Below, piece by piece: positions 20,869 through 32,470 of a stretch of DNA of 64,000 nt. How positions within the stretch are numbered: position 1 is the stretch's first letter; each line of letters begins with the position of its first letter. The notes beneath the pieces were generated by a model, which worked only from the letters and a program-made list of their open reading frames with translations, was not told the DNA's origin and searched no databases. The DNA is taken from contig CDROCS010000506.1 in NCBI GenBank assembly GCA_977020255.1, positions 372,001-436,000 of the forward strand, read 5' to 3'. This DNA is from Obrimoposthia wandeli. Its lineage: Eukaryota. Both the position numbers and the translations under genes were made by a program.

Positions 20869-21774
20869 TTAAATCGCTTGGCGGCTGCTAGCCGTTACAA
20901 CTGGAGTCTCTAGCCATTGTTGCAGTGCTCCCCAACTTGCTTGTGCTTCAGTCACGCCTTCTTCATAACGTAATTTGACCTTATCTTTGTCTTTTTCTAG
21001 TCGCGAAATATCTGACGGTGCTTGCGGGCGAATAACAAACACTTTACCTTGTCGTTGCCATTCTGCGATCTTATCTAAGGCGTTATTATAATGCTCATGG
21101 CGTGCATGCAGGGCTTGATATAACTTCGGGTATTTATAACAAGCAATACGACAAGCCAAGTCCATTTTCATGGCTGATTTTCGGTAACTTTCATGCTGAC
21201 TTAAAATAATAACTAAGCGGTCACAGCCCGACTCAAAAGCATGTTCTGCGGGAATGGGGTCCATAATGCCACCATCAAGATAAGGCATGTTATTAATCAT
21301 CATAGGTTTGGAAATAAACGGCAAACTTGAGGTCGCGATAAGGCTGTCTAATACCTGATCTTGGGTGGTTAATTGCTGAGAAGAAAAATAATCTGTCTTG
21401 CCGGTTTTACAATTAAACGCGCCTATTTCAAATACTTCCTTCATATTGAATAACATATCAAAGTCATACGGCACCAATTGTTTGGCCATCGCATGAAAAG
21501 TAAAAGGGGTATTAACATAACTACCGGTTTTAAGCAGGTGCTTCATGCCCATATAACGTGGGTCGTCATGGTATTTAAGCTGAATATTCAGGTTACGTTT
21601 ATGCTGTTTTGATACGTAGGATGCGGAATAAAGCGCGCCAGCAGAAACCCCTGACACATACGGGAAATGCACTGCACAGGTAAGGAAATGATCTAATACC
21701 CCTGCGCCAAACATGGCTCTTAGCCCGCCGCCTTCGACGATTAACCCTACTTTATCTAGACTCACGTCACTCAT
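20869..21774 (-). CDS. Patatin-like phospholipase
   Basis: EGGGLRA, GVSAG nucleophile, YLDGG. Likely start MSDVSLDK at 21774. Confidence 0.92.
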   Translation of the reverse strand: MSDVSLDKVGLIVEGGGLRAMFGAGVLDHFLTCAVHFPYVSGVSAGALYSASYVSKQHKRNLNIQLKYHDDPRYMGMKHLLKTGSYVNTPFTFHAMAKQLVPYDFDMLFNMKEVFEIGAFNCKTGKTDYFSSQQLTTQDQVLDSLIATSSLPFISKPMMINNMPYLDGGIMDPIPAEHAFESGCDRLVIILSQHESYRKSAMKMDLACRIACYKYPKLYQALHARHEHYNNALDKIAEWQRQGKVFVIRPQAPSDISRLEKDKDKVKLRYEEGVTEAQASWGALQQWLETPVVTASSRQAI

Positions 21775-21880
21775 TACCGACTCCATTGATGACAACCTGT
21801 TGCGAACATATCTATTATGGACATGTCTATGCAACACATTATCCCTCCCCCTCAACAAAGTCTAATGGTTTCAGCTAATA

Positions 21881-22801
21881 CTATCTACCCACAGTATCCG
21901 CCAAGGTTTTGCCTACACGTTCATTTTTAAAGTGCATGTGCCCAGATGAAAACGCGGATACATCCAGATTAATGACTTGCTTGGTATTATGGCTTTCAAT
22001 TTTGGTCAGTCCGGCTGGTGTATGAGGGAAGATACCTTCTGCCCCATTGGCACCTTTCAATACATCATCATTATCGCTATAACAATTAATCAATTTAAGC
22101 TCGGTGTGCTTTGCCAATATAGGAGCCCACTGCTCAGCGTCTGCAGATACAGCACCCGCCAACAAATAACAGCTAGAAATGGTATTGGCATCAAGGTTTT
22201 TTAACGCCTCACAAGCCACCTTGGCACCCAATGAATAGCCCATTAATATTGCGCCATGTAATTGCTTATCAGCTTGTACTGCGTTAGCTAAATCAAGGCC
22301 AGCATGTAATGTTTCATTAAACGATTTATGCCAATGTCCGACCAATTTATCTGCGACTAAGCCACCAATCAAAGCGGCAATACCCGCAGGGCTCATATCC
22401 CGTGCAACCTTGGCCGCTGCTAACCATTTATCAGCGCTGTTATCCTCGTTTACGGTAACCATACTTTCAGTAGCACTGCCAATAACAGCACTGCCATTAC
22501 GCGCTATATCAATAATATCACCCGCATTCCAGCGTACATGGATAACCTTGTTTTCAGGATACAGTTCATCAACAACACTTAGCCAATCAGATACCACTTC
22601 ACCCTCTTTAGAAAGGTAACCATTAATAATCAGAATGCAGGGTAAACGCCCTTCCCTCACAGTAACGAGCTTTATAGATGTGGCGTCCCTAGCAACAAAT
22701 TCTGCGCTACCTTGCGGTGTTAACAAGCCTTTTAATTGTTCACGTACTAGGTTTGATTCTGCATCTTCAGCTGCGTTAAATGTATCGAATAAACTCTTCA
22801 C
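21881..22801 (-). CDS. DUF726-like alpha/beta hydrolase
   Basis: ILIINGYLS, LMGYSLGAKV, LLAGAV, NCYSDNDDVL, GHMHF. Confidence 0.75.
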   Translation of the reverse strand: MKSLFDTFNAAEDAESNLVREQLKGLLTPQGSAEFVARDATSIKLVTVREGRLPCILIINGYLSKEGEVVSDWLSVVDELYPENKVIHVRWNAGDIIDIARNGSAVIGSATESMVTVNEDNSADKWLAAAKVARDMSPAGIAALIGGLVADKLVGHWHKSFNETLHAGLDLANAVQADKQLHGAILMGYSLGAKVACEALKNLDANTISSCYLLAGAVSADAEQWAPILAKHTELKLINCYSDNDDVLKGANGAEGIFPHTPAGLTKIESHNTKQVINLDVSAFSSGHMHFKNERVGKTLADTVGR

Positions 22802-22923
22802 TAAAATATCCTAAGGTAATGACATCCATGTTAAATCTCGGCGGTCATTATAGAGATTATTATTAGACTGATAAGCCTATTCATACCAAAGACTGAGGAT
22901 TATGTGATGGGTGAACGGATAAA

Positions 22924-23052
22924 TCAGTCGTTGCTAAGATCGTAACCACAACCTAAGCAGTTCGCCATTAAGTTAGGTGGCATACAAATGATTAAGCCAC
23001 ACTTTGGGCAGAGATCGCCTTGATTCAGACTAGTGATTGATTTGATGTTCAT
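22924..23052 (-). CDS. 42-aa zinc-ribbon-like small protein (not in ORF track)
   Basis: MNIKSITSLNQGDLCPKCGLIICMPPNLMANCLGCGYDLSND*: two CxxC pairs; SD-like aagga upstream of the ATG. Confidence 0.65.
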   Translation of the reverse strand: MNIKSITSLNQGDLCPKCGLIICMPPNLMANCLGCGYDLSND

Positions 23053-23175
23053 GTGTTTCCTTTACTCTGGTAGTTAAAGTATTGATGTGAGATTAACGCT
23101 AGTATGACTGTATTCTCATCTGTGTATATTTCGTTTATGAAATAAGTCATTGAAAAGATATAATGAGCTATCAAA

Positions 23176-24101
23176 CTAAGAGGTAATCGCGACATTAAAA
23201 GCAGAGGGACTCTCGCTGTCTTTTTTGACTCTGACCTCAGTTACCTCTGCAACATTAAAAGTGACCGTAATGCCTTCTCTAATATCACGCTCACTACTTT
23301 GTAGTTCCCGAGCATTAAAATAATAATCACCATCCTTAGTCTTAATGAAACCAAATCTTTTCTTCGGTTCCCATTTACGCACTTTACCGTGAAGTGTATG
23401 TAAATCACCTTTCGCAGCTTTAGATTTTAAGGTAATAAAACAGCGGTCATTGGTTTCTTGGACAATATCAAAAAGTGCACTCCTACTTTTAATCAATTTC
23501 TTTAAGCTTTGAAAACCTTCACTTCGAGGATCAAAAGAGGAGTCAATTTGTTTAATCATACTCTTATGTCATCGAGATAAACAGGCTCATTTCTGCCCAA
23601 TAATAAGTGGTCATAAGTTATATTCAATAGTAAGCGGTATCTAAGTCACTTATTGTTTATTTGAGTAACGTCGAATAAATTATCGGTAAATACAAAGTTG
23701 TGGCATGCTTTCCTAAAGCGTTCGGGGGTATTTTTCTTACCTATAGCCATTACATGTATACCATATTCTCTAATTCGCTGTGCAACACTATAAAAACCAC
23801 CATCACTCGACACAATACAAACCGCATTAATACGTTGGTTATTATTAATGACTTCAATCGCATCCATGACTAAAGCATGATCTGCAGCATCTTTACCATA
23901 GTGAAACTGCTGTTTAGGGCTTGATGCTGTTTCGTGCAAGATATCTTTCCATGCTTTTTGGTGCGGGTCAGTCCAATCGGCATATACCCACTTAATAGCT
24001 ACAACACCGTGATTTTCAACTTCCTTTAACATCGCCATATATTCGTTGTATGAGGCATTTTCAGCATCCACAAGTACTGCAAAGGTTAATTCTTTTTTCA
24101 T
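23176..24101 (-). pseudogene. Disrupted NYN-domain + LOTUS/OST-HTH + cold-shock-domain protein
   Basis: NYN (AVLVDAEN, GKDAAD, VSSDGGF) ends at TGA 23646-48. The same frame continues ...NEPVYLDDIRV*, then a one-base frame change leads to MIKQIDSSFDPRSEGFQSLKKLI (LOTUS) and GKVRKWEPKKRFGFI...DYYF (CSD). Confidence 0.75.
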
Positions 24102-24129
24102 CAATACTCTCCTTGTATAATCTCTTAAA

Positions 24130-24483
24130 TTAGCAAAAATTCTTTGTAAGATGCCATCCAGCACTAGATTTGCATTGGTACACTTTCAATCGAATCCCCT
24201 GCTCAGCATAAATAATATCAGCTCTTAAATTAGCTTCGCGCTTAGAACGGTAAGAGTCCTTGTGCATTCCATCCCCCCCAGTGCAATGATTACACTTATG
24301 GCTAGGCGTTTGTCGTGATTTTGGTGATAAATGCCAGAGCCCACATTTATTGCAATGGTAAGGGCTTAAATCATTGTCATAATAATCTTTAGCATACTCA
24401 GCACCGCTTAGTGCTTCTTCCTCATCAAAATATTGAGTTAAAGGCTGACCAGATACTTTTCCAAAACATGTTTCACTTTTCAT
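24130..24483 (-). CDS. Hypothetical protein with two tandem Y-x-C-x(2,3)-...-WHL modules
   Basis: PYHCNKCGLWHL and VYQCKSSAGWHL; RBS agga before the ATG at 24483. Confidence 0.7.
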   Translation of the reverse strand: MKSETCFGKVSGQPLTQYFDEEEALSGAEYAKDYYDNDLSPYHCNKCGLWHLSPKSRQTPSHKCNHCTGGDGMHKDSYRSKREANLRADIIYAEQGIRLKVYQCKSSAGWHLTKNFC

Positions 24484-24622: not shown

Positions 24623-25105
24623 CTATTTACATGCACCAGGTGTACGGCATGCACATGTAGATGGCGCGTGACAGGCATGACCACTACAACGTGTAGCGTT
24701 AGCTAGCTGACTAGGATATTGACCAAAATGACGTTCATAATTGGCTTTAGTATTGGTAAATGCAGCCTCTAGATTCTCATTGTCATCTTTACCGTATATG
24801 CCAAAATACGGAAAGTGATCGAGATAGAAACCAAACACGCTATCGCAATCATCACGATATGAACGTGTATCAAGAATATGCGCATGCCAAAATTTATCGA
24901 CAAGCTTATTCGGTACTAATATATCTTTTGGGTGAAGTAATTTTAACGTTAAATAGCGGCGATATTCTTGCTCGGCAAGTGCACATTCTTCTTTGGTCAT
25001 TTCAGCTTCACTCGACTCACAAAGCTTCCATTTCAGCTTGTCAAAATTGAGTGTATTAACATATAAATGAATACCGTTTGCACTTGTATTTATCGATGAT
25101 TCCAT
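24623..25105 (-). CDS. Glycine-rich-domain-containing (GRDP/DUF1399-like) protein with Cys/His-rich tail
   Basis: EYRRYL, PNKLVDKFWHAHILDTRSYRDDC..VFG.YLDHFP; tail CSGHACHAPSTCACRTPGACK. Confidence 0.72.
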   Translation of the reverse strand: MESSINTSANGIHLYVNTLNFDKLKWKLCESSEAEMTKEECALAEQEYRRYLTLKLLHPKDILVPNKLVDKFWHAHILDTRSYRDDCDSVFGFYLDHFPYFGIYGKDDNENLEAAFTNTKANYERHFGQYPSQLANATRCSGHACHAPSTCACRTPGACK

Positions 25106-25305
25106 TGATTTGTCCTTAATAAATAAATGAGTTTTATAGTTTTATTAACTAATAGATTTCGAATATTTAATAAGACGATTGTTGAGCACTAGTTCATTAA
25201 ACGATGTTAATGAGGCTGTATATGTCTTCATTAAATAACTCCTATTTGGTTAACAGGAGTTATAATGAATTTGTTCCGGGCATAAAAAAGGGTTATTTAA
25301 TTATT

Positions 25306-26053
25306 TTACTTATAATTTAATAATGACTGTAAATAGCTCGCGGCTTCCTCGGCATCAACTTGTTTTGCAATGATGGTTTCTTTCAACGAAGTGACTCTCG
25401 GCAAAGGTAGTAATGCTTCTTGTTCTAATGCCTCAAGTTGTAATATAGCCCCCTGTACGTCTTTCGCTGCATAGCTTGATTCAGCGACCTGATAACGCTG
25501 GGCATAACTCTGCCAAGGAATAGGCTCTTCAAAATAGGCAAGCATAGGCTCGAGGTTATATTTATCATTCTTGCAACTGCCAAAAGGCGATGGCAGTCGT
25601 TCGGTGAACAAATCGAAACTATTCGACTCTAAGCTACTAGCAATTTCAGTCATATTGTTTATATCTATGCCAAGACAAAAGAAGATCAATGCTTGCTCCT
25701 GGGTTTGCTGTAGCAAACTAGAAATATTGACTTTTTTAGCTTGGTACTGAAATATTTTTTTAGTTGGCCCAACACCAACTACGGCAATTAGACATAAGGC
25801 ATTATAAATCGCATTACTTTTTCCGACTAAAAACCCTCGAAGATTGTTATGAGATCGGTGGCTTTATATAACACTTCGTTGCTCGAAAGCATACTGATCG
25901 GAGCATTAAGATGCCCGATTTTTATCATTCGCGTCTTCGTAACACCGTTTAATGCTGTGTACTAGTCGGTAAAGCTCTTATCTTCAAGTTCTTAAAAAAG
26001 ACTTAGCTCGCAACTACAACGTATATTGAACCTGCTTCAGTTTTTTTAGACAT
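25306..26053 (-). pseudogene. Probable degraded gene (third gene of the 27254-25306 operon)
   Basis: An ATG at 26053 overlaps the upstream TGA but hits a stop after 16 codons. An ATG-less frame is open from about 25866 to 25306 and contains the listed 136-aa ORF. Confidence 0.5.
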
Positions 26054-26556
26054 CAATACGTTTCCAATTCAGCTTCGCATAACACATCTCTGATCTTACT
26101 GCGCGAGCTTAAAGAATGTGTCGTTGATATTAATCTTTTCACCGCGGTCATATCTGTAGCACACTGGTAAACATAATTCTTATACTTTGAATAATAACTG
26201 TCATAACGTGAGGGACGATACTTCTCATTATTGTAGCGGTCATATACATAATTAATCACGCCCATACACTGGCCTATTTGTAGCGCTTCTTTTTTACTTA
26301 AGCTTAATGCGCCTAATACGTTAGTTTTATTTTCGACCACTTCACCACAAGCTTTAGATAGCTCTTGATCAACGCCTCTTTTGACCAATTCGACGCCGAC
26401 ACACTCGCCTGCTTTAATCACTTCTGTTGAATTAAAAAATATAAGGTTCGTTTTATTAATTAGGGTAACGCTCTCGTCACAACGGGCTGGGACTCTCATA
26501 TCTGCGAGGCTATTACATGAAATAACGAGGGTTAGTAACAACAATAATTGTCTCAT
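26053..26556 (-). CDS. Secreted Cys-rich hypothetical protein
   Basis: Signal peptide MRQLLLLLTLVISCNSLA; ATGA overlap with the upstream gene; several Cys in the mature part. Confidence 0.75.
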   Translation of the reverse strand: MRQLLLLLTLVISCNSLADMRVPARCDESVTLINKTNLIFFNSTEVIKAGECVGVELVKRGVDQELSKACGEVVENKTNVLGALSLSKKEALQIGQCMGVINYVYDRYNNEKYRPSRYDSYYSKYKNYVYQCATDMTAVKRLISTTHSLSSRSKIRDVLCEAELETY

Positions 26557-27254
26557 TCTGTCAGCTCCTTGCCACAAAATCTAAACGCCCTAAAACAAAT
26601 AAAAACAATAAATAACGTATATACAGCACCCAGTAAATCAGCTGTAGCACCTTCTTCGAACCTTTCAAAATTAATCGATTGCAGCGCAGGATCCACGGTC
26701 ATCACGACTATGATTAGTGGTACAAAAACGATTAACATTAAACGTAGATTGTTAAATAGCATCCGATTAAAAGCATTAGCTATCATTGCTATACGATAGC
26801 GCTTTTGCGGATGTTGCTTGGTTTGTTTACCCAGTTTTTTTATCGCTATAAAAATAATGCCGACAGTCATTACAACTTCGAATACATTAACCCAAGTAAG
26901 GCTAGATACTTCACCTACTCCAACTATAATTTCTTTACTACTCTGATAACCCCAATAATATATACCCACCATACAAGCCAAAGAAATTAACATAGTCACT
27001 ACCTGCAGTAAGGACTGAAACCATGTTTGTTGTATATGCCTAAACTCATACACTCCTTTAGGATCGAATAACCGAATCTTTTGACGATGTCGGTTAAGAA
27101 AATCAATCTCCCTAGGGATAAATTCAGGTTTGATGGTGCTTTGTGGCTGTGATATTACTTCCGGCTCTACTTGGTCTTTACTTTCAAAGGTTGTAGTTTG
27201 TGTTTCTGAACTATATCCATCATCTCTGACAAGTTGCGAGGCTTCCATTTCCAT
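26553..27254 (-). CDS. Hypothetical multi-pass membrane protein
   Basis: Acidic/polar N-terminus followed by about 4 hydrophobic helices. Confidence 0.7.
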   Translation of the reverse strand: MEMEASQLVRDDGYSSETQTTTFESKDQVEPEVISQPQSTIKPEFIPREIDFLNRHRQKIRLFDPKGVYEFRHIQQTWFQSLLQVVTMLISLACMVGIYYWGYQSSKEIIVGVGEVSSLTWVNVFEVVMTVGIIFIAIKKLGKQTKQHPQKRYRIAMIANAFNRMLFNNLRLMLIVFVPLIIVVMTVDPALQSINFERFEEGATADLLGAVYTLFIVFICFRAFRFCGKELTE

Positions 27255-27381
27255 TCCAGTATAAAGTTTAAGTTCATGAATAATATCACATTAAAATAGA
27301 ACCATATAACTAGGTGCTGTTTTTATAAACATTTTTATACCCACTAAGACTTATCGCACACTTTAGTCTAGATTCGAGCAG

Positions 27382-29106
27382 CTAACCCCACTCTCTTAAC
27401 TGCTGCATTTCTTTCAGTCGCCCGCGCTGTAATTCCAACGCTTCGAACAGGTCATCGATTGAGGTATTGTTAGTTGTGAGCCCCGGCAAGGCAATATTAG
27501 CTTCAGCAAAGAAACGTATTGAGTCAGTTTGATCATCATTCCAAGCTTGCTGCCACCAGTCGGTGATTCGAGATCTAGCATCTTTAAGCTTGCTTGCTGT
27601 TGGTAGACTATCACTTTTCTGACCGTTAACTTTGTTGTCACTTGGTAGCAGATTCCACAGATCGTTATTCGGCCAGCGTGCAAACGGCATGCAGTGGTCA
27701 ATAGCAAATTCTTGCTTCAAAACCTTACCAGACCAGACACATTGCTGACTTTGTATTTGTCGTAATACGTCAAAACGCTTTCGACTTTCTTCTGTAGAGC
27801 GTTTGGCCTCTAACCAATCTAATGAGTTCACTATTGCAAGTTGCTGCTTAGGGCTCTTATTACCTTGGTAAGCTTGCATGGTTTTCATCCATTCACTGAC
27901 AAGCACTGGTTCAACCCAACACGCATAACGTGCAAAGGCATTCCATACAGTTTCTGGTAGTGAGAACTCGCCCCATTGCGACAAGGATTCCATATCTAAA
28001 AACAAGCTGTCTTTGGCACGTACTGTTTTGCTTTCAACTTCAAATACACTGACATCACTATTAGGCAAAGTTATATATTTGCAGGGCATGTTTTTGATGT
28101 TGCTCACTGCAGCCGTTAACGTACGGTGTAATGCTTTAGCATCATCGCCGACAAACAGATGACCAATACGATAATCAGTTGCAGAGCGATGCGTTAGCTT
28201 ATGCCAACCATCATCTTTCATGAAACCCATATTCGGGCTTTTACTTGGGGTTTGGTATAAACCAAGCTGGTCGATAAGTACTTTGTATTGATGACACCAA
28301 TATAACGCCACCAGCCCGACAGGTAATATTACTCGACTTCCTTGCAAAGTATGCTCGCGACGAATAACTGCGCCAGGGTGTCCATCAGCAATCCGTAACA
28401 ACACCCGCATTAATGCCAGTTTATGTGTAGCTGACTTACCATCATTTAATGCCACATGACGAATGAAAGGGAACGCCCCCGAACCATCATCAGGTAGCTG
28501 TAATACTACGGTTTGCCAATGCACGGTATCACGACCAAGTTTATCGCTATCGTGTTCTGTTTTAAGCACAACAGACAAACCTACAGTCTTAGCCAATAAC
28601 TCTAACTCTTCGGTACTGACATCATGCATTTTACGTTCATCACCACTGGGGCCATGACGCAGAGAAATAACTAATTTTGCACCGGGTTTAAGGAGGTTGG
28701 CTAATTTGCGGATTGCACGAGGACGGTCACTTTTAGGAATATGCATCCACACGGCACTGAGCAAGATTAAATCGAAGCTCACTTCTTGGCGACTAACAAC
28801 ATCTAGCGCAGGTAATGAATCTTCCACCCACTTTACATTCAAGCCTTGAGTTTGTTGCTGGCCGATTTCGGCTAATAGCTTGGCAGGTTCAACAGCGACA
28901 ATACTGATATCATTGGCTTCGCCTTGTTCTGCGAGGTATTTACTATCACGCCCTGCCCCAGCACCTAAATCAAGAATTCGGGCGTTAGGTTTGTTCAAAA
29001 TTACAGGTAAGAATTCAGCCCATGCGGCATGCACTTCTTCGAAGGATTTAGATAAGTATTGATCAGCTAGCTGTTGAGCATTAGCGTCATAAAAGTTGGC
29101 GTGCAT
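27382..29106 (-). CDS. Class I SAM-dependent methyltransferase fused to an HNH endonuclease
   Basis: Motif I ILDLGAGAGRD, LSAVWMHI; linker KSATHKLAL; HNH IDHCMPFARWPNNDLWNLLPSDNKVNGQKSD. Confidence 0.88.
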   Translation of the reverse strand: MHANFYDANAQQLADQYLSKSFEEVHAAWAEFLPVILNKPNARILDLGAGAGRDSKYLAEQGEANDISIVAVEPAKLLAEIGQQQTQGLNVKWVEDSLPALDVVSRQEVSFDLILLSAVWMHIPKSDRPRAIRKLANLLKPGAKLVISLRHGPSGDERKMHDVSTEELELLAKTVGLSVVLKTEHDSDKLGRDTVHWQTVVLQLPDDGSGAFPFIRHVALNDGKSATHKLALMRVLLRIADGHPGAVIRREHTLQGSRVILPVGLVALYWCHQYKVLIDQLGLYQTPSKSPNMGFMKDDGWHKLTHRSATDYRIGHLFVGDDAKALHRTLTAAVSNIKNMPCKYITLPNSDVSVFEVESKTVRAKDSLFLDMESLSQWGEFSLPETVWNAFARYACWVEPVLVSEWMKTMQAYQGNKSPKQQLAIVNSLDWLEAKRSTEESRKRFDVLRQIQSQQCVWSGKVLKQEFAIDHCMPFARWPNNDLWNLLPSDNKVNGQKSDSLPTASKLKDARSRITDWWQQAWNDDQTDSIRFFAEANIALPGLTTNNTSIDDLFEALELQRGRLKEMQQLREWG

Positions 29107-29281
29107 AGCTAATCTTAACCTCAGATTTGGATGCGTGGAGACTGAGGTAGATTAGCATAATAGGTATTCTAAATATATATAGGTAGTTAATAATACAATC
29201 TCATGAACCGGATACTTTACCTTATTAGTATCTGATATCATGGTGAATATATGGAATATTATTTTTATACCTAGGCTTATC

Positions 29282-32200
29282 ATGAATCAAACTGGAATCT
29301 ACGAACAACTCATCACACAACTAGTTGAGCAAAAGATAAATCGAGACTCATATTACGTTGGTGAGCGTCGATTAGAGGATGGTGAAGCAACTAGCTGGCT
29401 ATCTCGATTCCTCACTCGATTGATAGAAGTTGCTATGGATTCAGTACCCCAGAGTAATTTACGTATTACTAAGCAGATTGAGTTAGCTAATACGATTATT
29501 CATTGGTTAAGTGAACACATTCAAGATCCTGAATTAATCACAGATAACCTACTCGATAGCCAAGGTCGTATTTTAACTGCGATATTTGATAAAACAAATC
29601 CGATTGCTGCTGATTTACCTAAATATGTTGAATCTATAATGCCCCTAACTGGCCTTAGCCAAAGTGAACTCTTTAGTGGCAGTAATGCAGAGCCGTCTAT
29701 TGATAATGAATTACAGCGCGAAATAAAATCTTCTGACAAAATTTATTGGCTAGTTTCTTTTATCAAGTGGAGCGGCATACGTATATTTAAAAGAGAACTT
29801 GAAGAATTTGCTCGTAGTGGAAAGCAACTAAAGATTATTACAACGTCTTATATGGGTGCGACAGATGCGAAAGCAATTGAGTTTTTAGCCGCACTACCAA
29901 ATACCGAAGTTAAGCTCAGCTACAATACCAACCGTGAACGATTACACGCTAAGTCTTATTTATTCCTGCGCGACACAGGATTCCATACCGGTTATATCGG
30001 TTCCTCCAACTTATCGCACTCAGCGTTAACCAGTGGTTTAGAATGGAACCTCAAAATAACGTCTCAAGAAATACCCCATATTATAGATAAATCAGTGAGC
30101 ACCTTTGAAACCTATTGGGAATCGCCTGATTTTGAATCATTTGACGGTAAAACTGAAAGTCGAGAGAAACTAACCCAAGCATTACGAGAAGCAAAAGGTA
30201 ACTTTGACTCGAGTACTACACAATACTATTTTGACATTAAACCCTATTCCCACCAGCAAGCTATTTTAGCTAAATTACAAGTTGAACGAGAATTACACCA
30301 ACGCTATCGAAATCTTGTTGTTGCTGCGACCGGGACAGGTAAAACTATTATTTCTGCTTTTGATTTTTCGCGTTTTTATCAAGCGAATCCCAGCGCCAAG
30401 TTTATGTTTATTGCGCACCGAGAAGAGATCTTAAAGCAAGCACAAGGCGCATATCGTGGCGTGCTTAAAAACAGTACTTTTGGTGAACTCTGGGTTGGTA
30501 ATAACAAACCAAGTAAATACCAACACTTGTTTGTCTCGATTCAAAGTCTAAATAACCAAATAAATACATTACAGCTTAGCCAAGATTACTTCGATTATAT
30601 TGTTATTGATGAAGTTCATCATATTGCTGCCAATAGTTACAGAAGTGTATTAACGCATTTCCAGCCGAAAATTTTACTTGGTCTAACAGCAACACCTGAG
30701 CGCCATGATGGTGAAGATATTTTAACTGATTTTTGCAATGTCATCGCGGCAGAAATCCGCTTACCTGAAGCGATAAATCAACGTCACCTATGTCCATTTC
30801 AATACTTCGCGATCGATGATAATACCGACTTAACTCGTATTCCTTGGTCACGAGGTCGTTATGACGTAGCGGAGCTAACTCGTTTATATACCTATAATGA
30901 CCATAGAGTTATGCAGATCCTACAAAGCCTTGACGAGATTGTTACCGATATAAGTCAAATGCGAGCGCTCGCATTCTGTGTCAGTAAAGAACATGCCGTA
31001 TTTATGGCACAGAAGTTTACTCTAAAAGGCATTGCTTGTGGCGTGCTAACTAGTGATAACAGTCGTGAGCGAGAGTTACAACAACAACGCCTAAAATCAA
31101 AACAAATCAATGTTTTATTCGTTGTAGATATGTTCAATGAAGGCGTTGATATTCCTGAGTTAGATACTTTATTATTTTTAAGACCAACAGAAAGCTTAAC
31201 TATTTTCCTACAACAACTTGGACGAGGTTTACGACTTACTGAGGGCAAGGAGTGCTGCACCATACTCGACTTTGTTGGCAATTCACGTCCTGAATATGAC
31301 TTTACACAGAAGTTTAGAGCGCTAGTCGGTAAAACGAATCAACCTATTAATAAAGAAATTAAGCAAGGCTTTCCCAATTTACCCATAGGTTGCCGTATTG
31401 AGTTGCAAGAAAAGACTCAAGCGATGATTTTGAAAAACATCAGCGATGCAACACTCAACAAAAGTAGACTAATAAATTTAATTAATAATTATCCTCATGT
31501 AACGAGTTTGCCATTAACACTGACTAATTTTTTACACATTAATCCTAATTTTACTGTTGAAGATATCTATAAAATAAAACTCGGTAAGTTTGGTGGTTGG
31601 TCACGATTAGTAACGCAATGTCACTCCATCATCGAACCAAATTTAACAGACGAATTAGCCAGTGCCTATTATCGCGCAATCAACAATCGATTACTGATAT
31701 GCACCTCGGTATCTTATCTTCGATTTTTATTAAAGTTATGTAATAACAACTTTACCTTTAGCGAAAAAGATAACAGTGACAAGCAATTCCAATTATTTGC
31801 TCTTATGTGCCATTATGACTTTTGGGATAAATCAGGTCCCACATTAGGCTTTGATTCTTTATCTCAAAGTTTACAAGCATTAAGGCATCCACTTTTACAG
31901 GATGAGTTAAGTGAGGTTCTTTCACTATTAATTGATCGATTAGATATCAACGAGTTTGATATGCCTAATATGCAGAACTCAAGAATGCCATCATCGCCAA
32001 TAAAAATGCACGTTCGTCATCCAAAAGAACACATTCTAGTGGCGTTTGGTGATAGTCGTTTTGATAAAAAGTCATCAAGTCGTGAAGGTGTATTAAAAAT
32101 TGCAGATATGAATGCTGAGTTGCTGTTCGTAACATTGAACAAATGTGAGACGCAATTTTCTCCAACAACCATGTACCATGACTATGCAATCAGCCCAAGT

Positions 32201-32470
32201 CTATTCCATTGGCAAACACAAAACAGTGCTAAACCAACATCAGGTAAAGGCCTTGGTTATATTCAACAACAGCAGACTAATAAGACCATTTTGCTGTTTG
32301 TTAGAGAGCAAGCCAAAGATGAAAACGGTCGCACGATGGGATTTGTTAGTTTCGGTCCTGTTTCATTTGTTAAATCAGAAGGCAGTCAACCTATGAATAT
32401 TACGTGGAAGTTAGCTCATGAGATGCCAGCTTACTTATGGCATGACACAGCCAAGTTAGCAGTTGGTTAG
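29282..32470 (+). CDS. PLD-nuclease + SF2 (DEAD/DEAH-like) helicase + DUF3427 protein
   Basis: PLD LHAKSY...GSSNLS; Walker A ATGTGKT, DEVHH, GLTATPER, FNEGVDIP, QQLGRGLR; C-terminal YHDYAISPSLFHWQTQN. Likely start MNQTGIYEQL at 29282. Confidence 0.88.
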   Translation: MNQTGIYEQLITQLVEQKINRDSYYVGERRLEDGEATSWLSRFLTRLIEVAMDSVPQSNLRITKQIELANTIIHWLSEHIQDPELITDNLLDSQGRILTAIFDKTNPIAADLPKYVESIMPLTGLSQSELFSGSNAEPSIDNELQREIKSSDKIYWLVSFIKWSGIRIFKRELEEFARSGKQLKIITTSYMGATDAKAIEFLAALPNTEVKLSYNTNRERLHAKSYLFLRDTGFHTGYIGSSNLSHSALTSGLEWNLKITSQEIPHIIDKSVSTFETYWESPDFESFDGKTESREKLTQALREAKGNFDSSTTQYYFDIKPYSHQQAILAKLQVERELHQRYRNLVVAATGTGKTIISAFDFSRFYQANPSAKFMFIAHREEILKQAQGAYRGVLKNSTFGELWVGNNKPSKYQHLFVSIQSLNNQINTLQLSQDYFDYIVIDEVHHIAANSYRSVLTHFQPKILLGLTATPERHDGEDILTDFCNVIAAEIRLPEAINQRHLCPFQYFAIDDNTDLTRIPWSRGRYDVAELTRLYTYNDHRVMQILQSLDEIVTDISQMRALAFCVSKEHAVFMAQKFTLKGIACGVLTSDNSRERELQQQRLKSKQINVLFVVDMFNEGVDIPELDTLLFLRPTESLTIFLQQLGRGLRLTEGKECCTILDFVGNSRPEYDFTQKFRALVGKTNQPINKEIKQGFPNLPIGCRIELQEKTQAMILKNISDATLNKSRLINLINNYPHVTSLPLTLTNFLHINPNFTVEDIYKIKLGKFGGWSRLVTQCHSIIEPNLTDELASAYYRAINNRLLICTSVSYLRFLLKLCNNNFTFSEKDNSDKQFQLFALMCHYDFWDKSGPTLGFDSLSQSLQALRHPLLQDELSEVLSLLIDRLDINEFDMPNMQNSRMPSSPIKMHVRHPKEHILVAFGDSRFDKKSSSREGVLKIADMNAELLFVTLNKCETQFSPTTMYHDYAISPSLFHWQTQNSAKPTSGKGLGYIQQQQTNKTILLFVREQAKDENGRTMGFVSFGPVSFVKSEGSQPMNITWKLAHEMPAYLWHDTAKLAVG

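Follow-up and report, generated by a model that had tools for sequence, protein, structure and literature searches.

The stretch of DNA analysed here (the window, 64,000 nucleotides; positions 372,001 to 436,000 of contig CDROCS010000506.1 in assembly GCA_977020255.1 of Obrimoposthia wandeli) contains two large, divergently transcribed nuclease genes, here called A and B, which are probably two complementary restriction genes that anchor a variable defence island, neither of them requiring the other. Judged from sequence, B is a new member of the characterised SauUSI family and a complete type IV restriction enzyme, and A is an uncharacterised variant of the McrA-like reader-nucleases that carries a non-canonical methyltransferase. 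The association of both genes across genomes is genuine but facultative, and they do not form an obligate pair. The locus lies on a Moritella contig (C506) within a multi-organism assembly (G000), and this contig is probably an associate or a contaminant of the eukaryotic host assembly, since the latter (1.35 Gb, 6,912 contigs) contains several different bacteria. Two intact long open reading frames (ORFs) diverge at the locus, of 574 amino acids for A (27382-29106, minus strand) and 1076 amino acids for B (29240-32470, plus strand). The alignments of B orthologues begin only at residue 7-15 of the longest ORF and the start codon in the closest relative (G102) corresponds to position 29282. 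The start of B is therefore most likely the ATG at 29282, giving a protein of 1062 amino acids and a spacer of 175 bp between both genes. The original prediction of two divergent enzymes about 175 bp apart, each with its listed domains, was borne out by the ORFs, the Pfam matches and this start codon. The features are the following:

27382-29106, minus strand: gene A, methyltransferase / winged-helix / HNH fusion of 574 amino acids (ORF, Pfam, homologues, AlphaFold2)
28495-29106, minus strand: A residues 1-204, class I S-adenosylmethionine (SAM) methyltransferase domain of predicted small-molecule type (Pfam, Foldseek)
27799-28494, minus strand: A residues 205-436, winged-helix domain with a predicted fold like a sulfur-binding domain (SBD) (VIA-align, conservation)
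27385-27798, minus strand: A residues 437-574, HNH nuclease domain of Cas9/McrA type (HNH_4, VIA-align)
29107-29281, no strand: divergent intergenic region of 175 bp (sequence, alignment with G102)
29282-32470, plus strand: gene B, SauUSI-family type IV restriction enzyme (PADLOC, PDB 7clg, Pfam)
29717-30109, plus strand: PLD (HxK) nuclease domain of B (PLDc_2, RE_NgoFVII, SauUSI alignment)
30236-31237, plus strand: SF2 translocase of B, ResIII plus Helicase_C (Pfam, motifs read from the sequence)
31772-32446, plus strand: DUF3427 (SRA-like) target-recognition domain (TRD) of B (DUF3427, SauUSI TRD alignment)

Profile matches, motifs and alignments agree on the nature of B. Pfam annotates PLDc_2 at residues 160-290 (3.2e-09), ResIII at 333-488 (5.9e-42), Helicase_C at 562-666 (3.3e-11) and DUF3427 at 845-1069 (3.7e-24), and the PLD region also matches RE_NgoFVII (7.4e-06). 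Helicase motifs I (GTGKT), II (DEVH), III (TATP) and VI (QQLGRGLR) can be read directly, and the catalytic H119 of SauUSI is aligned with the histidine of the HAK motif in the PLD domain of B. The PLD HxK nuclease, the full SF2 motif set and the DUF3427 C-terminus that had been proposed for this protein are accordingly all present. The PADLOC mREase_IV model (PDLC03659) matches B at 3.9e-220 over residues 132-1072, covering positions 14-941 of the 945 in the profile. SauUSI of S. aureus (PDB 7clg) aligns at about 2e-85 from the PLD domain through the TRD (B 143-1030 against SauUSI 43-917), and both proteins comprise a PLD HxK nuclease, an SF2 translocase, a coupler and a DUF3427/SRA-like TRD in the same order. 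Unlike SauUSI, B is encoded by a marine gammaproteobacterium, is often accompanied by a NERD gene and gene A, and carries about 100-140 additional N-terminal amino acids (window 29282-29700), for which no family match is found and which are 48-84% identical among B orthologues. Out of six proposed 5-methylcytosine-pocket residues of SauUSI, four are kept in B (F841, D858, W868 and, as Val, I842). M829 and Y831 (methyl contact) are not kept, in a stretch of the TRD where the alignment is weak. Because the equivalents of these two residues differ, the modification specificity of B may differ from that of SauUSI. The related profile TIGR04095 (dnd_restrict_1) scores 76.3 bits against B, below its cut-off of 600 bits. 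Lutz et al. 2019 (PMC6765204) report that proteins with a fused DUF3427 domain are located in defence islands and restrict T4gt, and the background given in the original prediction is thereby correct. It had also counted B as part of a two-component defence module, which is not supported as stated: B is a SauUSI-type type IV enzyme and hence of an already characterised kind, so that for the B half the outcome is the one that the prediction itself had named as speaking against it, i.e., identification as an already characterised system.

Gene A combines three modules, which AlphaFold2 models with high confidence (pLDDT 92 and 94.7). Pfam profiles Methyltransf_25, 23, 11 and 12 match residues 24-158 (1.5e-13 for Methyltransf_25) and HNH_4 matches residues 462-502 (9e-07). 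The methyltransferase domain has SAM motif I (LDLGAGAGRD), no (D/N/S)PP(Y/F/W) or PC motif IV occurs within residues 1-204, and the sequence following strand 4 reads LLSAVWMH. Its Foldseek neighbours (UbiG, FPP-MT, TPMT, NNMT) are small-molecule enzymes, weak matches to TehB, TPMT, PCMT and ArsM are observed as well, and every family and fold match found belongs to the small-molecule methyltransferases. The earlier view of a small-molecule-type methyltransferase devoid of the DNA motif IV is confirmed by LLSAVWMH and the Foldseek neighbours. By these features the domain is not a canonical DNA methyltransferase, and A, alone or together with B, falls outside classical restriction-modification (RM) systems of type II/IIG. 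In the HNH domain, D470, H471 and N485 are invariant across the family and N494 nearly so. VIA-align relates this domain to the Cas9 HNH (Z 6.9) and more weakly to EcoKMcrA and TagI, and Foldseek returns weak Cas9 HNH matches alone for the C-terminal module.

The middle domain of A (residues 205-436) carries a conserved KSxT(Y/H)KLALLR motif, has no Pfam match and retrieves nothing useful from the ESM Atlas. Its top VIA-align matches are the SBDs of SprMcrA (7ccd, Z 6.9 over 130 amino acids), Hga (8h0l, Z 6.5) and ScoMcrA (Z 5.9-6.5), and generic ORC/Cdc6 winged helices score alike (Z 6.3-6.4). A profile of the domain has no match among PDB sequences and recovers no SBD chain even at E-values up to 10, and in the family alignment of A no position could be assigned to the HR/HK and YP motifs that form the sulfur pocket of SBDs (PMC7461809). 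The C-terminal 370 amino acids of A resemble SBD-HNH/McrA-type enzymes (SprMcrA, ScoMcrA, EcoWI, EcoKMcrA, TagI) in that a winged-helix reader precedes an HNH domain and in that the closest folds are SBDs and McrA/Cas9-type HNH domains. They differ from these enzymes in having no detectable SBD sequence similarity and no SRA domain, and the N-terminal class I methyltransferase of A is found in none of them.

Over 1700 homologues of A were retrieved, and the best 120 listed are near full length with 61-97% identity. The C-terminal 370 amino acids match about 1,240 clusters at 50% identity; most of these family members measure 560-590 amino acids and include the methyltransferase, and some are stand-alone proteins of 367-420 amino acids. 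No homologue was found among 50,697 phage records. NCBIfam yields nothing above any family cut-off, and a full-text literature search for methyltransferase-HNH fusions found no paper on the A family. The PADLOC check suggested by the original prediction is clear for B, as given above, and of limited help for A: there is no model for the A family, and A is not in any listed PADLOC system, as its sole match is a partial one to the mad2 methyltransferase domain (2.8e-18). This MADS component (PDLC04134) is the best defence-library match for the methyltransferase of A and of its stand-alone relatives (1e-11 to 3e-18), but the match is confined to the Rossmann core (profile positions 267-447 of 492), and no MADS component appears in a PADLOC scan of the eight nearest ORFs on the A flank. 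Since mad2 is a predicted N6 DNA methyltransferase (preprint) of which only the Rossmann core is matched, a link of A to MADS was dropped.

Linkage between A and B was assessed after dereplication at 90% identity, in the lineages with at least 8 kb of flank on both sides of A (n = 39). B occurs within about 10 kb of A in 13 of them, at distances of 0-7.3 kb, and A stands without B in the other 26. At metagenomic A loci, B is located inside the available flank in 20 out of 79. An impression of no linkage, gained from the first 12 genome loci, was overturned by wider sampling, and the co-occurrence analysis proposed in the original prediction speaks for linkage across genomes. Across 201 genomes of the order, A shows a patchy distribution (n = 29), and genera other than Moritella also have A and B side by side, be they convergent, tandem or divergent. 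Orthologues of B are present in about 7% of the genomes sampled. Linked pairs span about 40-98% identity in A, and the pairwise identities of A and B co-diverge (r = 0.89, 14 linked pairs). In the group with 60-70% identity, both genes typically converge around 1-7 genes, which are mostly locus-specific. The neighbours of A are enriched in WYL (n = 6), NERD (n = 5) and ResIII/PLD/DUF3427 proteins (117 neighbouring ORFs). On alphaproteobacterial plasmids, A is found without B beside McrBC, toxin-antitoxin pairs, Septu-like AAA+HNH genes and insertion sequence (IS) elements. The view of defence-type nucleases in a defence island is supported. Two loci also contain a NUDIX hydrolase gene between the NERD and PLD-helicase genes (L020:3386-3784 and L070:10597-11061); for the first, PADLOC reports its candidate family PDC-S07 (4e-46), and the second belongs to the same BLAST cluster.

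Within Moritella, A is found at one locus in 10 of 13 genomes, with 86-98% identity, and 7 of 11 Moritella loci have A without B. The slot beside A is variable:

this window: B directly beside A
G102: B present, separated from A by a NERD gene of about 0.9 kb
metagenome-assembled genome DT_65 (G004): B at 3.1 kb from A, split by a frameshift
JT01 (G003): B at 7.1 kb from A, with NERD, YHYH, Lcl_C and two-component genes in between
M. dasanensis (G001): a Dcm + MvaI/BcnI restriction-modification pair in place of B
PE36 (G002): an AspBHI-like Mrr in place of B

In M. dasanensis and PE36, B was not found at any place in the genome. The absence of B from M. dasanensis, whose slot holds a C5 methyltransferase, is an indirect hint that B may cleave only DNA with 5-methylcytosine or 5-hydroxymethylcytosine. 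Between this window and G102, A is 98% and B 96% identical, and the NERD + zinc-ribbon nuclease gene that separates A and B in G102 (L017:9402-10232) is not present in the window. Both flanks are conserved (window 29107-29281 versus L017), and the difference is therefore a clean insertion or deletion. The NERD assignment comes from Pfam matches on the orthologues in L002 and L009, which fall in the same cluster. At the loose end at 29189, the junction version with the NERD gene is also seen in a DNA run from a relative (organism C).

Together, these observations suggest that the locus would be the edge of a variable restriction island in the Moritella chromosome, likened to an 'immigration control' region, with two separate nucleases that are transcribed divergently. 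By homology with SauUSI, B would be self-sufficient: its SRA-like DUF3427 domain would flip out a modified cytosine and thereby switch on the SF2 ATPase, after which B would translocate and its dimeric PLD nuclease would cut the foreign DNA. A would be an independent single-chain enzyme whose winged-helix domain reads a DNA feature, most likely a modification state as in McrA and SBD-HNH enzymes, and whose HNH domain cuts DNA. Least firmly, its methyltransferase may mark a non-canonical target or may couple the nuclease to SAM. A and B are often co-inherited and, together with WYL regulators and NERD nucleases, would recurrently anchor a slot in which other defence genes are gained and lost.

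Several points weigh against two independent anchor genes. The linkage in 13 of 39 lineages is far above ordinary island co-residence, with a rough chance estimate well below 1%, because B occurs in about 7% of genomes and a 20-kb flank makes up less than 1% of a genome of 4-5 Mb. This linkage persists down to about 42% identity in A with the co-divergence mentioned, and both genes remain direct neighbours in tandem as well as in convergent and divergent order. A sister clade of PLD-SF2 proteins (B'), 960-985 amino acids in length and ending in a Peptidase_S24-like C-terminus instead of DUF3427, is always directly preceded by a related class I methyltransferase of about 200 amino acids (MT'), often with overlapping genes. 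The 11 instances (L144-L152, L019 and, in the assembly of this window, C5732:17101-19472) tie a methyltransferase related to that of A to a PLD-helicase nuclease, so that functional methyltransferase-nuclease coupling would exist in the wider family. In one of them (L147) the methyltransferase is reduced to a 92-residue fragment. In B', PADLOC models reach no further than the PLD and helicase region, and the MT'-B' operon is strictly conserved and looks like an undescribed two-gene restriction system. The role of A, moreover, is predicted from sequence and fold, and its similarity to SBDs amounts to a middling Z-score without support at the sequence level. On the side of two separate genes, two runs of one marine metatranscriptome study contain contigs that are about 99% identical to the locus and cover A (27260-29125) and B (from 29242), leaving the 116 bp in between (29126-29241) uncovered. 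Two separate transcripts that diverge and have short leaders would be consistent with this gap, but the contigs derive from an RNA library in which DNA carry-over is possible, and they are no proof of transcription, strand or transcript ends. A scan of the 175-bp region for the sigma-70 consensus returned no site.

Much of the above could also be read as an obligate two-component system, in which the methyltransferase of A would provide a self-protection or licensing signal to B and/or to its own HNH domain, in an RM-like manner. The occurrence of A and B adjacent or near to each other in many genera and orientations, their co-divergence, the translationally coupled MT'-B' operons including the one with a methyltransferase fragment, and a locus (L018) where a methyltransferase, a PLD-helicase-DUF3427 protein and NERD form one operon all argue in this direction. 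Nonetheless, we consider it unlikely. B is missing in two thirds of the well-flanked A lineages and in most Moritella loci, one to seven unrelated genes can intervene when it is there, and it has all domains of the self-sufficient SauUSI. Six genomes carry a close B orthologue without A, and these copies are 70-93% identical to linked ones (92.5% in one case). Likewise, a second bacterium in the assembly of this window has an intact B orthologue with 78% identity (C253:4078736-4084752), and about 2.5 kb from it only N- and C-terminal remnants of A with stop codons are left. From the two-component module outside classical RM that was initially proposed, the non-canonical methyltransferase and a real linkage are retained, but obligate pairing is not, as both genes occur alone, in varying orientation and with up to seven genes between them. 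Neither gating of the HNH domain by the methyltransferase nor protection against B is supported.

A broader proposal builds on the relatives of the A-type methyltransferase. In L042 the homologue is split from the winged-helix-HNH part and both are encoded by adjacent genes, and in five loci it shares an operon with a different HNH protein (HNH_2 family, 380 amino acids). This clade might serve for modification or licensing in an undescribed RM-like class that is built on a class I methyltransferase of non-DNA type and has interchangeable nuclease partners, an idea to which we attach a rather low probability. The partners may be a fused winged-helix-HNH module (A), a split one (L042, G157, G176), an HNH_2 protein in an operon, or a PLD-SF2 protein in an operon (MT'-B'). 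In that case A and B would represent a looser version of methyltransferase-nuclease coupling, and a nucleophilic DNA modification, for instance a backbone phosphorothioate, could accept the methyl group.

The latter modification also underlies a reading of A that we hold to be decidedly unlikely, namely as a stand-alone relative of the methyltransferase and winged-helix-HNH module of dnd clusters, in which the SBD-like domain would read backbone sulfur, the HNH domain would cut and the TPMT/TehB-like methyltransferase would act on sulfur or another soft nucleophile. According to published comparative work (PMC10853773), Dnd neighbourhoods are populated by HKD-SF2, wHTH(SBD)-HNH and NERD nucleases, and the SBD is itself a winged helix-turn-helix. 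Four SBD entries are the best fold matches of A residues 205-434, and the weak TPMT, TehB and ArsM matches of the methyltransferase point the same way; yet the Z-scores of 6.5-6.9 lie within the generic winged-helix range set by ORC/Cdc6, the domain profile finds no SBD in the PDB and the HR/YP pocket motif could not be placed. In G157 (L157:7792-16942) and G176 (L043:1141-10518), a small class I methyltransferase lies directly upstream of dndBCDE, accompanied by a diverged winged-helix-HNH protein with the HNH subtype of A (hhalign 97%), i.e., a split relative of A, and by a 'DNA phosphorothioation-associated putative methyltransferase' of 627-688 amino acids. This dnd linkage consists of two loci with diverged, split genes rather than A. 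G157 is the only DndC-positive Moritella genome and lacks A, and all 29 sampled genomes with A are DndC-negative, a result that is not significant given an expectation of about 1.6 positives. The assembly of this window likewise yielded no dndC. Like A and B, the dnd pair of a TIGR04095 (PbeA-like) protein and a TIGR04096-type methyltransferase unites a PLD-SF2 nuclease and a Methyltransf_23-like class I methyltransferase in one defence locus; B matches TIGR04095 and PbeA weakly, and the TIGR04096-type methyltransferase occurs in the two dnd clusters beside the split relative of A. The pair differs from A and B in that B remains below the TIGR04095 cut-off and in that no sampled A genome has dndC. 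The methyltransferase pattern keeps alive both the licensing logic and the phosphorothioate link and does not prove either.

Very unlikely, finally, is a non-defence role for A, for example as a methyltransferase of small molecules or RNA joined to a repair-type HNH domain, that flanks an integration hotspot and is associated with B as a by-product: its constancy at one Moritella locus, its unusually high cross-genus conservation (61-70%), its small-molecule-type methyltransferase and the lack of a PADLOC model would fit, but its patchiness within the order, its plasmid copies beside McrBC, Septu-like genes, toxin-antitoxin pairs and IS elements, the recurring WYL and NERD neighbours, the split and alternative methyltransferase-HNH operons and the invariant catalytic HNH residues argue otherwise.

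Under the preferred reading of two complementary but independent restriction genes, B is a routine SauUSI-type barrier to methylated DNA, which is of use for Moritella genetics. The value resides in A, which represents a widespread and highly conserved family without a model in defence databases and joins a small-molecule-type SAM methyltransferase to a McrA-like reader-nuclease, and whose relatives have three or more further types of nuclease as partners and also occur inside dnd clusters. If the methyltransferase indeed marks DNA or senses SAM, this would amount to a new self/non-self logic and possibly to a reagent for reading a DNA modification. The locus also suggests that two accessory restriction genes can act as stable anchors of a defence hotspot.

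Directly downstream of A, four small genes (233, 174, 136 and 160 amino acids; window 24623-27254, minus strand) have no match in Pfam or PADLOC. Several Moritella loci and a metagenome-assembled gammaproteobacterium (L013) have the set as well, and in Psychrobium (L016) only the 233-residue gene is seen. Further on (window 20869-24164, minus strand), a patatin-like phospholipase with DUF6363, a DUF726 protein, an NYN nuclease and a small OST-HTH + cold-shock protein are encoded, which may be further cargo of the island.

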